A DNA stretch of 64,000 bases from Pecten maximus (lineage: Eukaryota), in NCBI RefSeq assembly GCF_902652985.1, contig NC_047017.1, positions 50,096,001 to 50,160,000 of the forward strand, in the 5' to 3' direction. Position numbers and translations under genes: made by a program. Of this stretch, positions 1 to 13,537 are shown one piece after another; within the stretch, counting starts at the first letter, position 1, and each line of letters starts with the position of its first letter. Below the pieces are notes generated by a model. It did no database searches. It saw nothing but the letters and a program-made list of their open reading frames with translations, and was not told the origin of the DNA.

Positions 1-3000
1 CAGAAAATCGTTACATGATAACTTTTAACACCAGATACCTACGTTTATAGGGAAATGTGTGTACATATATGTGGACATAATATTATCTTACCGTCGATTT
101 TTGAGACGAAATGTCGACATTTCTGTTAACTCTTTCCTTGTATGATTTTGAAAATTGTGCAATGATTGAAATGTTTTAATAACTAACATATGAAAAGAAA
201 AATGGTGGCATGGGGATGATATCAAGATGTCCTCCTTATCTGAGTCATTTCGAATATTGGTCATTTTCAATCTCGTAATAAATGTATCATTGGAAACCTA
301 TTCAATTAAACCTTAAGAAGTTATGCTCCTCAACCTAAAGATATGTATAAAGACATAGATAATGCCTCTTCATCGTCAGACACAGATCTATGCAAATGCA
401 AATGAAATGTGAGTGTTTATTAGCAACGAAGTGCTGGACAGATATAGTTACGGATGTAGATGGCATCATGCATTTAGTAGGCTAAAATGTTTACGTAATC
501 ATAATTGCATATAGCCATTAACGTGATAAATTGCTAAACAACATTTTTGATTATCTGTGTATTGTGTTACTCCATCAATACACGTATCTTGCTTATTTTT
601 AGGGATAAAGATACCTTATGAGCATTTATGCAGGGTAACTGAAAAAATGGGAAAAAAAGAAATGTAATCAATTGACCCCGAAATTAAACATATTTACATG
701 TCAAAACATGACAATTATCATCATAACATACATTATACACAACGCTTTAAATTCTTTGGCATGTACATGTATTTAGTTATATTTTGATTTGAATCCATTA
801 ATGCATTTTATACAAACATCACGCAAGTAAATATATACATGATAATTCTCTTTGCGGTTTGAACATGGCGCTCCATAGGTAACATATACAATTACATGTA
901 TATAAAGGATGCATCGGTACTCAAAAAGTCTGAAAGATAAATTCTTTATTATCATGTGTGAAATTCCCTGAAATGCAAACAAGCAATCCTGATCCAATTT
1001 AGTTTGCAGTCTCGAGGGATATTACTCCTGATACCAAACTAACTAGCAACACTCTTTCAAAACTGACCAATCCCGATCTGTCACAGTCGGATAACTCAAT
1101 GTCACATGATTAAGAATCGTATAACAGATACAAAGTTTATTATTCAAAGACAAACCTATTCCGAATAAAATGACATGTGACATAATAAAAATGTTTAGTT
1201 ATTACAAGTAAAACACGTTAAGGTTTATCTAGAGGATACTTTAAAATATGTAGTATTATTTTATGTTGTGTTCAATGACAAATTGCATTTTAAAGATAAT
1301 AACAAAATATGTCATATTTTACTTAATACAATCACTATTCACTGAATAAGATTTTTTTCATATCCATGTTACTTCAATCAAGTGTGTTGTCCACTGATGT
1401 TTGGTTTCAGCTACAAGGTATTTTAGAAACTGTTTTTCAAACAATTTTCAGATTTTCCTTGGACAATGATTGAACTACTGTATTGCATTTTATGTAATAC
1501 AAAATGGTTCACATGTATCATGAATTACAAAGTATGACAGTTAATACAACCGCGTAATGAATTGAAAACCAAGAAATACTTCAATCAAGATATATCAGTA
1601 TATTTTATAAAATATGTCCATGCTGAAAATTGGCATCGTCAAATAATGTTAGTCACTCAATAACAAGATTGGATATAGTCAAAAAATATACCATAGGATA
1701 ACAGAGAAAACTGTTAGGAAGCCAAATAAGATAAAGTTTTGCTTACGTGATTATGTTTCATTTCTCTTATGATAGGCCTGGTCTTATGTTTGATTACAGC
1801 TTCTTCCCTTAAATTCTTACTGAATTATGTACGTTGATGTTTACCCATGCATGTTAGCAATAACATCCTGTTCCACTTGTTCAGTTTTACATAAACTCCA
1901 CTGATTATTTCACAAAGTATACTGTATTGGGAAATACAAAACCATTTCAATTTCATTGTAATTTAGTCTTTTATATTTACTTATTTTCTTGGATGAAAGT
2001 GAAAGGAAAATGTCATGTTTGACACATTTGAACTTGACATTAAAAAGTATATGTCATTAAACATTATATATGGTTCTTTTGAACCCGACACGTTTGGTAA
2101 CTGATTTTTTTTGTCAATATTCAAATGTATGTCGTGGTTATGTCGGCATTATGTCAGTATTCTAACTCTTGTTCTTGATTTGTCGGTTATTAGCTGTTAA
2201 ATTTGAATATGCAGCAGGGCAAAGTACAAAATACAGCTAGCGGGCATGCTGTGTCGTACAGCTGGCCTACCTTTCGGCTGGAGTAAAGTGTTACTACAGT
2301 GCAGTCATGCGCTTCCCGCTGTGCCTGATCAGATTCAAATTGTACACATACATTTATAGTGAAAGACAAAATCAGGTTTTAGTTGTGTTAATTATGTATG
2401 GACCCGGACCTACCTCAAAATCTTCACTTCGTGAAAATAAGAATACTTAATTCATAACGTTATCACGAACACAAAACTGTAAACATTTTTTTTTTACAAC
2501 AATTGCGAAACAAGATATATCATCTTATATTAATCACCCCTTTTGGCCCGGATGGAAGCGCGCGAGAGATCTTTATAGGACGATTTCAAAACACAATTAA
2601 AAGATATAAAAACAACCTTTTTAGATATCAACACCATTATGTAAATTGGTAAATAATTTGATCGCTTCTGTTGTTGCAAATAGTTTCACTGTCTGCTGTT
2701 GTGATCAACAATTAAATATAAGAACATCAATAACTCAATGTTGTCCTCAATTTCTTATTAATTAATGAATCTATTGGACCTATACATATTAGATATGCAT
2801 GTTGAAATGTTTAAGTCATCTATCAAAATAATCAGTAAATCAGAATAACCTTACATGTGCTTTCATATTTCTTTTATATACATCTTCGTGGTCAGTAACG
2901 TCAACAGATATTTAATTAAAACAGATTCCCCATGCATCAAATATACAGCATAGCTTAAGTAATTCGTGTGTTGGATACGTTCCTAGTGACCGAGAATATC

Positions 3001-9661: not shown

Positions 9662-12087
9662 ATGAACAGAAGTTTGCAGTTTATTTCTGTTTTAAGGACA
9701 TGCATTGCAGTGGTTGCTCTCATGACATTTGGAAATGCACTGCAGTGTTTTGTTGATCCAAGCTTTTTGAAAAATAGATTGTACACGAACGTCAATGATG
9801 GTAAGACAAAATCTATATTCGATGTCGTTAATAATAATAATGCATGGTAAAACGAAAGTTTACATGTGTGCATATACATACATGTACATGTGTGGACACT
9901 GGACGGACATAATTTCCTGTGTTGTGATCTTTTTTCCTAGATGAAAGTTGAATTGCGAATTTGCAAAATATTATTATCAGGTCGTTATGAAAACACGAAG
10001 TACATGAACTGATTTTAAATTAAAAATATAGATGTGTTTTAAAAAAATATTTCATGCACGTTATATAAGTCTGTGATCAAATTGAATGACTTTTTTTTTT
10101 ATCAAAATTTAACCAGTTCACATATCACTCTTGTTGATTTCACTGTTGTTGATATGTGCAATATTACATATAGAGATATATAGTTACCTTGTAATTAAAG
10201 TATGAAAAAATATATAGCTGGATCTGAACATTTGCAGATCGTGGACTTACTAGTCGAATTGTTGGTATATGGACTTTAACGACAGCGATACTCCGCTTCA
10301 GTTGTGCTATAGACATATATAACAAGCCGTAAGTATTATTTGTACTCATTGAAGCAGTACCCAAATGTTGATCAAGTGCTAAATTTCATTCATGTAATTT
10401 TCATATTCACATCTGTTTTTTCTTCATCCTGTACTGTATATGTACAAGTTTAATAGATTCAAATTGGAAGGCAAAGTTTGATTATCACTAAATGTAATGT
10501 TAATTGCTATTCGCCATGTCACAATAAGCATGCTACCAATAACAAGGATTTTATATAATCATGTAAGTATGTTATTCAATCATATTTTTAACACCAAGTG
10601 TAAAAGGTGAAGGTATGAGATCACATTTCCTACTGTAGCTCAGAACGATGTGTATTTCCTTTAGCCTAGAGGTAAGATATCTAACTAGAGAATGAAAGGT
10701 CAGTAGTTCAGAAAAATCTCTCTTTTATACCTATCTGCCTATAGTCAATGTAATAAAACAATGTTGATACAAGTAAACACAATTCTTTGATTACAGGATA
10801 TTTGGATTAACAATTCTCTCATTTTTTGCTGGATTTGTACACTACATAGCTGAAATATTTCACTACAGGACAACAAATCTGATCCCATCATCGTTGATAC
10901 AGATTATTGTTTCAGGTAAGTTTGTTGGAATTTGTCAAACATACAGTATCCCTTTTTGATTTTTGTTCAACACATCCTAGATTAAAAAAAGGAGGGATAC
11001 AACTGTTTGTATACAAGTTATTCCCCTTCCCTTATGTTCAGCTCAACTACATTTTAGTGATCTTTTAAATACCTCTAAAGGGGCTGCAATATTTACTAGG
11101 ACCATGAGATTTACAGGCATGAATAGCAGATGTGTAACCTTCCAAATAAGAGATACTGATACATTGATGTATAGATAGATGTACATGTACGTGTAATGGT
11201 ATATTTAGGAAGGATATCATCATATATCATTATAATTGTAGCAGAACTGGACTGGACTGAGTGCAGTGGCCATGTAGCTCAAATGGTTAGAGTGTCCGTC
11301 TTGAGTTTGTAGGTTCCAGATTCGAGTCCCAGTCTAGGTCATTGCATTCCTCCTCTCTTGTTACTTTTTGCCCCCAACTAAATAAATACCCTAGAGGTGG
11401 AATACCTAGGGTCTTATTTGTATCTTTGAGTTCGAAGACTTTGTTTGAGGAGGGAGGTATGTAGCAGCACTGAACTGGGCTGAACTTGGTGGCCAGGTAG
11501 CTCAAATGGTTAGAGTATCAGTCTAGAGTTCGGATCGAGATCCCAGATTTGAGTCCCAGTCTGGTCTTTGCATTTTTCCTCTCCTGTTACACAATTAACA
11601 TCAATGTTAATATCCTTGAAATAATACAATCACCTCACACTACAAAAGTCCTTTTATTACCTAGGGATTTTATTTTAATACACACAGACTGTAGATGTCA
11701 GAAATCAATATTCTTTGATAATATAAACAAAACAACGCACACAACATAAAGGCTATACATGTGAAATCAAGCTGTGAAATGTGTGGAGGAACTGATCTTA
11801 TATATTAGAACAAACTCTGACAGCCATATTGAAAAAGAATGTAGTTTCTGAATCAGTTATTTCATGATTTATTGAAACATGGGTATAATGCTTCTTTCAC
11901 ATAAACAATGTACACAATTGATCTATGTTTTTAATTTTGAATCATTTTATTTACAGGAATATCAGTCATCGGATTGTGCTGTGGCTACCTATTCCTGGAT
12001 AAATCTAAAACAATTCAGACTATTGAAGATATAGAGGATTCTAAAAGGACTACATTTTCAAAGTATATGAAACGTAAAAGTAGCTGA
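9662..12087 (+). CDS. ERG28: Ergosterol biosynthesis protein 28 homolog (C14orf1), 4 exons, about 159 aa
   Basis: Exons 9662-9800, 10238-10328, 10797-10915, 11957-12087 join in frame: MNRSLQFISVLRTCIAVVALMTFGNALQCF...LTSRIVGIWTLTTAILRFSCAIDIYNKPIFGLTILSFFAGFVHYIAEIFHYRT...; matches the ERG28 pattern (GN.LQ.F, R..GIWTL....R..CAIDI.NK, H...E.F.Y). C-terminal KRKSS fits a KxKxx ER-retrieval signal. Confidence 0.93.
11237..11591 (+). mobile_element. Terminal-repeat retrotransposon in miniature (TRIM) with tRNA-derived LTRs
   Basis: Direct repeats 11237-11365 and 11460-11591 start TGTAGCAG and end TGTTAC(T/A); degenerate PBS-like TTGCCCCCAAC after LTR1; polypurine tract GAGGAGGGAGGTA before LTR2; flanks TAAT/CAAT; each repeat has A-box TAGCTCAAATGG and B-box-like GATT(C/T)GAGTCC. 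Confidence 0.8.
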
Positions 12088-12178: not shown

Positions 12179-12537
12179 GAGTGGAAAAGATTGAAAAATA
12201 TATACATTGAAGCTATGGCAGATAAGAGATTTTAAGTTTATCAAGGATAATTAATTGACACTTATCCATGAAATATAAAAGGGTATCTTCCTGATTCTCT
12301 TGTAAAAGTCTTATATTCATTTGAAGATCATTAAAACTCTTTTCTGTACATGTATATGTAATTTATATGTTGTAAACTTTGAATGGTGAAAAACACCAAG
12401 TGATTATGAGATTTAAGTCGGTTTTTACACCCTATAAGTATTCATTCTTCTTAATTTATATCCTCTAACCTAACACCACCATGGAAGTAGTGAAGATATG
12501 AATATTGGATTAAATTTACCTTAATTGGTATATAGGT

Positions 12538-12609
12538 TAGCCCGAGTTTCCTCTGGCCCTGACACCATATACACCAGATATGGTGTCAGGTCAGAGGAAA
12601 CTGGGGCTA
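12538..12609. repeat. 72-bp inverted repeat, MITE-like hairpin
   Basis: TAGCCCGAGTTTCCTCTGGCCCTGACACCATAT, 7-nt loop, ATATGGTGTCAGGTCAGAGGAAACTGGGGCTA; TA at both ends. Confidence 0.8.
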
Positions 12610-13537
12610 GGTAAGGTGTGATGACCAGTTTCCATCTAACAATTAAGGTTGTCTTTATCTAGTTAGATGACCATGTGTACACCTGTCCAGATCTTCACAC
12701 CTTACGAGGTAAACTGGGAGGAAGGGGTCATTATTGGGGTCAGTGTAAGTCTGTCTTTCTCCACACCCCTGTAATCACGCTTGATATACAGGTAAATATT
12801 GACCTGGAAGTTGGGTTGGGGGGGGGGGGGGGGGGGGGAATATCTTATATAACTGTTAAAAGAACTCCATGTATGACCAGGATTTAATGAGCCAGGTATA
12901 ACAAAAAAAAAGGTGGTTTACCAAATGGAAATTTAAGACTGATGTTAATCTGTAAATCTGTCAAAATTAGACATTTGATCTGGAATATGCTATCAAGGTG
13001 ATAAAACATTTTTTTGTAATGTATGTTAAGATAAATATAAACTGTTGGAAGAAAAGAATTTGAAACATTAAAACCAGTAGTACTTCGAGTACAAGATATT
13101 TCCAGTACACAATCAAACTTTACATTTTGAGAGACCACAAACAACTTGCCAAATACATTTTTGTTTATTACCAGTTTCTATTCATTTACGTGGCTTGTTA
13201 AAACTCTTCGAATCAAAGGAATGCTATCATACATTTTTCAACGAAGTGCCAGATCTATTCATTTTATATAGGGTTTACTGATAGAAAAAATCAATTATAT
13301 TAGATGCTGTTAGTTAACCAACTAAAAATGAACCAACAAAATAATAAGATGATATAAAGAAAGATAAAACAGTAACACATATCTTATTGTTTAAGGAGTC
13401 TAAATGTATAGGAGTATACATCTATCTATAAACATTATGTATACATCCGGTATACATCTATCTATAAACATTATGTATACATGCAGGTTACAGGTACATG
13501 TAATACATGTGGAACCAGGTAGGATTGGAGCCTGATA

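Follow-up and report, generated by a model that had tools for sequence, protein, structure and literature searches.

The host intron and the inserted element

The window, a stretch of 64,000 nucleotides from the scallop Pecten maximus (contig NC_047017.1), carries an RNA-supported model of ERG28 on the forward strand, the third intron of which occupies positions 10913–11953 (1,041 bp, GT..AG). Spliced contigs in four runs from four studies join position 10912 to 11954, and a Pfam Erg28 match spans three exons upstream. The RNA evidence consists of assembled contigs, the form of all 24 available runs; four of these runs were examined at the locus. Lying within this intron in the sense orientation, and removed from the transcript by splicing, is a 355-bp element at 11237–11591, made up of an LTR of ~130 bp, an interior of 93 bp, and a second LTR of 132 bp.

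The two direct repeats (11237–11365/6 and 11460–11591) emerged both from reading the sequence and from a repeat finder, which bears out the sequence-only reading of this DNA, where an apparent pair of tandem tRNA pseudogenes had been taken for one 355-bp element with two direct repeats of ~130 bp. They are 83–88% identical in ungapped blocks and 80.3% identical over the whole length, and both start with TGTAGCAG. The 5' LTR (11237–11365, forward strand) ends in TTGTTACT, its terminal CA having mutated to CT, and is collinear with the LTR of a young copy of the element at locus L023; the 3' LTR (11460–11591, forward strand) ends in CCTGTTACA and is likewise collinear with young copies. The non-coding interior (11366/7–11459, forward strand) opens with TTTT-GCCCCCAAC, closes with GAGGAGGGAGGTA, and is collinear with the 90-bp interior of young copies. 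It consists of a spacer, a PBS remnant TTGCCCCCAAC at 11368–11378 that keeps 9 of the 11 positions of TGGCGCCCAAC, a further ~60 nt, and a purine tract (PPT) at 11447–11459, which abuts the 3' LTR at the place where young copies have GGAGGGAGGTG. The flanks of this copy, TAAT at 11233–11236 and CAAT at 11592–11595, were read by hand; they agree at 3 of 4 positions and are the remnants of a target-site duplication (TSD).

Each LTR holds a tRNA-like unit on the forward strand, as had been proposed from the window and as other family copies confirm. The decayed unit of the 5' LTR (11268–11340) was placed by alignment to the homologous unit of young copies; its A box (11275–11286) is intact, its B-box-like motif (11318–11329) has one mismatch to GGTTCGA, and it gave no Rfam tRNA match. 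The unit of the 3' LTR (11491–11567) also has an intact A box (11498–11509), together with a B-box-like motif carrying two mismatches (11546–11557) and a 7-bp acceptor stem, two of whose pairs are G-U. It matches Rfam RF00005 over the full model length at 21.7 bits (E 0.2), below the gathering score of 29, and was picked up only by Rfam in E-value mode. ARAGORN made no tRNA call in the window because the units are too decayed. For young copies, ARAGORN reports tRNA-Thr(AGT) and Rfam a tRNA of 44.1 bits in each LTR.

Across the family, 47 of the 53 LTRs carry at least four consecutive Ts within the final 40 nt, just behind the tRNA-like unit; such a run lies elsewhere in only two LTRs. In the 3' LTR of the window copy it is a T5 run at 11573–11577 (forward strand), a few bases 3' of the unit, matching the Pol III terminator motif. 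The 5' LTR lacks the usual run inside the LTR; a T5 run at 11365–11369 (forward strand) lies at its junction with the interior and in this copy would act as a Pol III stop. RNA contigs over the element are limited to short pieces that fit only in part and whose ends hang loose at 11548, 11584, and 11591. Fragments of paralogous copies occur in RNA contigs joined to unrelated flanks, and we read the pieces at the locus as stemming from other copies, not from transcription of the window copy.

The family in the Pecten maximus genome

A check for other copies, as suggested in the sequence-only reading, returned at least 1,082 candidates in the first genome search, mostly full-length matches. The LTR-interior-LTR layout or LTR arrays were found at 29 other loci, and the collinear recurrence of the whole layout at dozens of loci in the genome puts it far beyond chance. 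In these other copies, the proposed unit of ~350 bp, with TG..CA ends and the order LTR-PBS-PPT-LTR, held. Exact junctions of LTR end, spacer, and PBS numbered 226, compared with 0 in the control, which settles the proposed check for an intact PBS. Exact 4-bp duplications, also predicted, flank 8 of 17 scorable copies, where ~0.07 would be expected by chance, and four more copies match at 3 of 4 positions. Copies are dispersed over all chromosomes, and most have exactly two LTRs with defined ends. The search for solo LTRs and tandem arrays yielded one candidate solo LTR and several arrays of three or more LTRs (L010/L014, L017, and L019).

With its two tRNA-like units 223 bp apart, the locus could also be read as a dimer of an ordinary tRNA-derived SINE or as two tandem tRNA pseudogenes, and the genome paper reports many SINEs. 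However, the element has no A-rich or LINE-like tail; TG..CA ends, a PBS, and a PPT lie at the LTR borders, and fixed 4-bp duplications surround the whole two-LTR unit. Furthermore, the LTR pairs of young copies are 97–100% identical and have private changes in common, such as a substitution found in both LTRs of L023, and the LTR tree contains no separate clades of left and right repeats, the pairs grouping by element where resolved. Given the missing tail and the presence of LTR, PBS, PPT, and fixed duplications, we reject the SINE2, dimeric-SINE, and two-pseudogene readings, whose probability we regard as negligible. The arrays, with junction triplets spaced 219–224 bp apart, might instead suggest that the element is a small fragment of a satellite whose 219–224-bp unit was built from a tRNA-like repeat, and that it never transposed. 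Against this stand the predominance of two-LTR copies with defined ends on all chromosomes and the exact duplication ACAT on either side of the three-LTR array L010/L014. TRIMs are known to generate such LTR arrays as a side effect (PMC7215508, PMC6934838, PMC10886601). The satellite reading is contradicted by the duplications and by the dispersed two-LTR copies, and we reject it as very improbable.

Young copies of the transposed element are 348 bp long (129 + 90 + 129). Five of them (L018, L023, L025, L028, and L030) match, by eye and almost base for base, the consensus of Helenus-2_PeMa, which was described from the Pecten maximus assembly xPecMax1.1 with lengths of 129/90/348 bp and a 4-bp TSD (Kojima 2024, Biology 13:119, PMC10886601, Table S1 and Data S1). 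Natural copies, not a built consensus, served as our references for old and young copies. The window copy is collinear with L023 at 73–74% identity. Its identity to natural copies that match the published consensus, collinear over the full length, is 72.6–74%, to be set beside the usual family level of ~80% over 80% of the length; to any other copy it is only ~73–77% identical. As the sequence-only reading stated, this copy is old; its CpGs are depleted, and its B boxes and PBS are mutated. In the LTR tree its two LTRs do not pair, and the old copies radiate as an unresolved star, separate from the young clade (support 100/96). Together with ~20 other old copies it differs consistently from the young ones, among other places in U3 nt 17–32, in an extra D-loop T, and in the 3' part of the acceptor region. 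These sequence comparisons place the window copy in an older wave, of which it is a relic. With ~73–77% identity and unpaired LTRs, it may belong to Helenus-2_PeMa itself or to a sister family of greater age, and the older wave may or may not fall under that name.

Primer, candidate partner, and proposed replication

The intact PBS of family copies, TGGCGCCCAAC, can pair with the 3' end of the genome's own tRNA-Lys(CTT), covering acceptor strand, discriminator base, and CCA, in line with the tRNA-Lys PBS recognized in the window from the copy that keeps 9 of its 11 positions. The genome contains 27 tRNA-Lys-type 3' ends complementary to the PBS, and ARAGORN called tRNA-Lys(CTT) at three of the four loci checked. 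At L032, the 37 nt that come after an LTR and spacer form a perfect complement of tRNA-Lys(CTT)+CCA. We identify this as a primer-copy fossil, its 37 nt copied from the tRNA, which indicates priming by tRNA-Lys(CTT). Three sites (C8:13.625 Mb, C19:15.344 Mb, and C40:40 kb) have a Helenus LTR end and a PBS that continues at position 12 with G, as tRNA-Lys does, and not with T.

An autonomous element with the same termini and PBS had been expected, and one Gypsy element agrees with Helenus over 8 nt at the 5' end of the LTR and over 9 nt at its 3' end, and likewise has the tRNA-Lys PBS. A blastn-short comparison of a young Helenus copy with this candidate found nothing beyond the PBS and LTR tips. 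The copy of the Gypsy candidate that we examined has no matching duplication. Among Gypsy-like families with a tRNA-Lys PBS, three others were rejected as partners because their LTR tips differ: L053/L062, with LTR ends GGTGACA, L055, with LTR ends TTGTCACA, and the families at L042 and L050.

We interpret the window element as a fossil TRIM of the Helenus type, non-coding and non-autonomous with a tRNA-like unit in each LTR, and give this reading a probability of about 0.93. The sense insertion into ERG28 intron 3 is ancient; it produced a 4-bp target duplication, and the copy has decayed since. In the living family, the tRNA-like unit would have supplied the A and B boxes for Pol III and the T-run behind it would have marked the 3' end of the RNA, which would divide the LTR into U3, R, and U5 of ~32, ~80, and ~16 nt. 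Most Pol III transcripts would end within the 5' LTR, at the T4–T5 run right behind the promoter, and a full-length template would require read-through of the first T-run. Reverse transcription would then have started from tRNA-Lys(CTT) paired with the 11-nt PBS and from the purine tract, with reverse transcriptase and integrase supplied in trans by a Ty3/Gypsy element. It is possible, though on balance doubtful, that the window copy belongs to an older, unnamed scallop Helenus family with relatives ~75% identical to it, that the Gypsy family with TGTAGCAG...CCTGTTACA termini and a tRNA-Lys PBS is the autonomous partner of the lineage, and that R, as defined by the T-run, essentially coincides with the tRNA-like unit. 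If all of this is true, replication would rely on incomplete Pol III termination within the 5' LTR, and an animal Helenus would for the first time have a concrete partner and a transcript model.

The template RNA might instead come from Pol II or from read-through of a host gene, with the tRNA-like unit serving packaging or stability, or being a SINE relic, and yielding a dead-end RNA of ~80 nt that ends at the T-run. The position of the T-run, in the 47 of 53 LTRs, is that of a normal Pol III stop, Kojima 2024 (PMC10886601) describes the function of the Pol III promoter as not validated for Helenus, and the contigs joining paralogous fragments to unrelated flanks fit read-through as well. Nevertheless, the A and B boxes were kept from the old wave to the young one while the neighboring U3 sequence changed, young copies are free of T4 runs in their interior, a U3 of 32 nt leaves little space for a Pol II promoter, and Cassandra provides a precedent (PMC10886601). 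We consider a Pol II or read-through template unlikely. The primer-copy fossil, the Gypsy family with matching LTR tips, and the conserved T-run could aid tests of the unproven model in which Pol III makes these elements.

Helenus and other known elements

The window element belongs to a published class and, as a dead copy in an intron, requires no new explanation. The name Helenus for tRNA-bearing TRIMs, given in the sequence-only reading, proved correct (Kojima 2024, PMC10886601), and its suggestion that the family might be new failed, with Helenus-2_PeMa already described from this assembly and the window copy a diverged older relative. Both the class and a young relative from the same assembly have been in print since 2024, which makes the finding correct but unremarkable. 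New are the match between tRNA-Lys(CTT) and the PBS, the primer-copy LTR fusion, the Gypsy element with like termini and PBS, and the T-run in 47 of 53 LTRs. In bivalve genomes, "tRNA pseudogenes" that come in pairs ~220 bp apart are Helenus LTRs; annotation should mask them as Helenus and not tally them as tRNA genes or SINEs.

Like the window element, tRNA-derived SINEs (SINE2) are short, non-coding, and high in copy number, with a tRNA-like head bearing A and B boxes, but they have a tail for the LINE machinery, duplications of variable length, and no LTR, PBS, or PPT, whereas the window element has the hallmarks of an LTR retrotransposon. Biv-TRIM (Sci Rep 2019, PMC6934838) is likewise a bivalve TRIM with solo repeats and tandem arrays; it differs in having no canonical PBS, a conserved inner motif TGATCCCAAAGGAC, and no described tRNA-like LTR. 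With up to two mismatches allowed, this motif is absent from the window, and as the PBS of the Helenus family is canonical, biv-TRIM was ruled out. Cassandra, described by Kalendar 2008 as summarized in PMC10886601 and PMC7215508, is a TRIM whose LTRs hold the gene of a small RNA, complete with Pol III promoter and terminator, and which forms tandem LTR-interior arrays. In contrast to the window element, with its tRNA-derived LTRs and 4-bp duplication, it is a plant element with LTRs derived from 5S rRNA and 5-bp TSDs; Cassandra and Ajax were ruled out because an Rfam scan at E<=1 gave no 5S match, the tRNA being its only match.

The window element has the traits of Helenus (TRIMp3): a short non-coding interior between two direct LTRs, an overall size far below ~1.3 kb, a tRNA-derived unit in the LTR, a PBS, a PPT, a TSD, and TG..CA ends. 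Helenus-1_ArIr, from another scallop genus (Argopecten irradians, PMC10886601), has LTRs of 130 bp, an interior of 93 bp, and a total of 353 bp, against 130/93/132 and 355 bp in the window; compared by eye only, its termini, PBS type, and T-run are alike. Helenus-2_PeMa differs in that its young copies are only ~73–74% identical to the window copy, but it is alike in LTRs of ~129–132 bp, an interior of 90–93 bp, 4-bp TSDs, and a tRNA-like unit at the same place, as well as in its termini TGTAGC...CCTGTTACA, tRNA-Lys PBS TGGCGCCCAAC, and PPT GGAGGGAGGT.

Structure and decay of the ERG28 intron copy

The element at 11237-11591 is a Helenus-type TRIM, a miniature LTR retrotransposon with a tRNA-like unit in its LTRs. 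By direct reading and repeat comparison, its 5' LTR (11237-11365/6, forward strand) begins TGTAGCAG and ends TTGTTACT, and its 3' LTR (11460-11591, forward strand) begins TGTAGCAG and ends CCTGTTACA; the two are 83-88% identical in ungapped blocks and 80.3% identical overall. The interior opens with a T-run and then GCCCCCAAC, carries at its start a remnant of the primer-binding site (PBS), TTGCCCCCAAC (11368-11378, forward strand), and ends with the polypurine tract (PPT) GAGGAGGGAGGTA (11447-11459, forward strand), which abuts the 3' LTR. The sequence-only reading had described these direct repeats and interior as well as the flanking bases, TAAT and CAAT, which on hand reading do agree at three of four positions. 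It had also placed a tRNA-like unit in each LTR, and Rfam finds one in the 3' LTR (11491-11567, forward strand) as a full-length but sub-threshold match, at 21.7 bits against 29. ARAGORN called no tRNA in either unit of this copy.

The age of an LTR pair is given by K/2r. Here the pair has diverged by K = 0.23 (Jukes-Cantor), from which we judge the copy to be old, with no absolute age attached. As had been supposed, its CpG dinucleotides have decayed: 5 remain, where a young copy has 21. The PBS is preserved at 9 of 11 positions, one of the terminal CA dinucleotides is gone, and the B-box-like motif has one change in LTR1 and two in LTR2; a T5 run is present where LTR1 meets the interior. This copy is a dead element.

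Pfam Erg28 matches three open frames (9692-9799, 10204-10347 and 10687-10917), and RNA contigs (four runs, each from a different study) connect 9799 to 10237, 10328 to 10797 and 10912 to 11954 with GT..AG ends. These joins place the copy inside the 1,041-bp third intron of the ERG28 model, in sense orientation and 324 bp 3' of the donor site, and it is removed cleanly by splicing. Short RNA-contig pieces over 11167-11757 end loosely or join non-canonically; they seem to derive from other copies and are uninformative on the transcription of this one. Within the ERG28 last-exon/3' region there is also a palindromic interspersed repeat of ~90 bp (12525-12614), with ~31-nt arms around a short loop (~12537-12600). 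It has at least 740 first-look candidate copies in the genome, those scored being 89-98% identical. RNA-contig depth on it is very high in all four runs (up to ~6,800), and many contigs end loosely at 12536-12538 and 12568. The repeat appears to be a young MITE-like hairpin element, widely transcribed within other RNAs.

Relatives in the scallop genome

The king scallop assembly xPecMax1.1 (PMC7191990), comprising 918,306,378 bases in 3,983 contigs (the largest of 60,076,705 bases), was searched with the window element and returned at least 1,082 first-look candidates, and most of the 40 that were scored span all 355 bp at 72-77% identity. Among 29 other loci that were fetched, the LTR-interior-LTR layout is nearly universal (313-368 bp), and three of the loci hold three-LTR arrays. 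An exact 4-bp target-site duplication (TSD) surrounds 8 of the 17 copies with both tips recognisable, where ~0.07 exact matches would be expected by chance, and a further 4 agree at three of four positions; one exact TSD, ACAT, surrounds an entire three-LTR array. The genome contains 226 exact junctions in which 2-5 nt separate the LTR end from the PBS, versus none in the control, and several are spaced 219-224 bp apart, which indicates arrays.

Five young copies (L018, L023, L025, L028 and L030) measure 347-348 bp, divided 129+90+129, with LTR pairs 97-100% identical, and L023 has a private substitution common to both of its LTRs. The near-identical pairs and this private change are what LTR retrotransposition leaves behind. 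A maximum-likelihood tree built from 53 LTRs, old and young, puts the young copies in a single clade (support 100/96); the old ones form an unresolved star. Repeats are not separated into a left and a right clade; where the tree is resolved, pairs cluster per element (e.g., L002, L023 and L027).

The two-LTR unit could be taken for tandem tRNA pseudogenes, for a dimeric SINE or for a satellite, but all three readings are contradicted by TSDs of a fixed 4 bp around this unit, by a PBS and a PPT located where the interior meets the LTRs, and by the pairing of LTRs in the young copies. Nor are the copies ordinary SINEs, the outcome that the sequence-only reading had set against itself, as those fetched are nearly always LTR-interior-LTR and exact TSDs flank 8 of the 17 scored. 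Both its observation and its structural interpretation are right.

One candidate solo LTR, also among the features it had proposed to look for, was found at L025 (1913-2027, forward strand). This old-type LTR lies 64 nt from the young, oppositely oriented Helenus-2 copy, is followed by neither PBS nor interior, and has flanks (CACC/CACT) agreeing at three of four positions.

Probable priming by tRNA-Lys and a candidate Gypsy helper

A tRNA T-arm followed by GTTGGGCG occurs at 27 genome sites versus 0-1 in the control, and of four such loci that were fetched and checked, ARAGORN called three as tRNA-Lys(CTT). All 11 nt of the PBS TGGCGCCCAAC are exactly complementary to the 3' acceptor strand, discriminator base and CCA of this tRNA, so the proposed tRNA-Lys PBS is matched by the genome's own tRNA-Lys(CTT). 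The fourth locus (L032 ~1374-1545, reverse strand; G000:C3 ~19,096,350-19,096,520) is not a tRNA gene but a Helenus-2-type LTR. After this single LTR and the usual AAAT spacer come 37 nt that are the exact complement of tRNA-Lys(CTT)+CCA, reaching back to tRNA position 40, with unrelated DNA beyond; there is no second LTR at the locus. It is probably a stray integrated by-product of reverse transcription with the copied primer tRNA, resembling plus-strand strong-stop DNA. If so, it would be direct evidence, from a single case, of tRNA-Lys(CTT) priming in this lineage. At three further Helenus LTR-end/PBS junctions (C8:13.625 Mb, C19:15.344 Mb and C40:40 kb), position 12 of the PBS is G, matching tRNA-Lys, instead of T.

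CA, 3 nt and at least 15 nt of tRNA-Lys PBS occur in succession at fifteen genome sites, and these searches yielded one Gypsy family as a candidate for the autonomous element, sharing termini and PBS, that the sequence-only reading had envisaged. Its LTR ends with CCTGTTACA, the last 9 nt of the Helenus-2 LTR, and begins TGTAGCAG, as the window LTRs do at 8/8 nt and the young LTRs at 7/8. Six junctions of this type exist genome-wide. One 7.6-kb copy (L060, C5:2.91-2.92 Mb) has 584-bp LTRs that are ~98% identical, the 3' LTR being broken by insertions, and encodes a PNMA-type gag, protease-RT-RNase H and a separate integrase, which is the Ty3/Gypsy order, spread across three frames; its flanks show no matching duplication. 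On comparison, Helenus-2 and this family share nothing beyond LTR tips and PBS; the link to this candidate helper lies in the tips recognised by integrase and in the primer. This agrees with the view that animal Helenus depend on Gypsy elements and need no long shared LTR stretches (Kojima 2024, PMC10886601).

A copy of the same Gypsy family (L037/L059, G000:C1 ~15,060,980-15,061,030) holds a head-to-head junction of LTR end, palindromic double PBS (TTTTGGCGCC..GGCGCCAAAA) and inverted LTR end, and at G000:C8:13,625,424-13,625,505 two Helenus LTR-end/PBS junctions are oriented towards each other across 57 bp; both are possible products of aberrant reverse transcription or recombination. Tandem-repeat arrays, with self-matches at many offsets (75-98% identity), directly adjoin four of the fetched Gypsy-type loci (L059 1-4486, L061 1-1121 and 7650-10000, L062 1-1002, and L060 1-1041), and satellite-rich regions may be places where LTR elements with a tRNA-Lys PBS accumulate. 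Two other such LTR families, one of 8.86 kb (L053 and L062, LTRs 99.8-100% identical) and one of 7.4 kb (L055, 99.5%), have exact 4-bp duplications at L053 (TATT) and L055 (ATAT), and their near-identical LTR pairs suggest recent LTR-element activity in the P. maximus genome.

Transcription model and published Helenus families

Each young-copy LTR contains a 73-nt tRNA-like unit at nt 33-105, identified as tRNA-Thr(AGT) by ARAGORN and scored at 44.1 bits by Rfam, with canonical A (TAGCTCAAATGG) and B (GGTTCGAACCC) boxes. A T4-T5 run lies a few bases 3' of the unit, within the last 40 nt in 47/53 LTRs; only 2/53 have a run of such length elsewhere, and young-copy interiors have no T4 run. If Pol III drives the element, U3 would be ~32 nt, R would span the tRNA-like unit up to the T-run (~80 nt) and U5 would be ~16 nt, and a full-length template would need read-through of the first T-run. 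Retroviruses, in parallel, disregard the poly(A) signal in their 5' LTR. A rival explanation that remains live is that Pol II or host read-through makes the template and the tRNA-like unit yields only a short RNA ending at the T-run. The Pol III model, with its U3/R/U5 boundaries, is our inference for Helenus-2, and promoter function in Helenus is not validated (Kojima 2024, PMC10886601).

Five families have been described from xPecMax1.1 (Kojima 2024, PMC10886601), among them Helenus-2_PeMa, with an LTR of 129 bp, an interior of 90 bp, a total of 348 bp, a 4-bp TSD and a PBS grouped under tRNA-Lys (PMC10886601). By eye, the young copies differ from its published LTR and interior at only one or two positions. 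The comparison with Helenus was apt. The suggestion of a possibly undescribed family falls at least for the young copies, as the class was published in 2024 together with its young member from this same assembly. The window copy, 72.6-74% identical to L023, is collinear with it through LTR, spacer, PBS, interior, PPT and second LTR. It shares with the other old copies a set of consistent differences from the young clade, located in part of U3, within the D-loop and past the acceptor stem, and so derives from an older wave of the same lineage, which may merit a family name of its own. To the published account we add, as leads and not as discoveries, the tRNA-Lys(CTT)/PBS match, the putative primer-copy fossil, the matching tips of the Gypsy family, the conserved T-run and the older wave.
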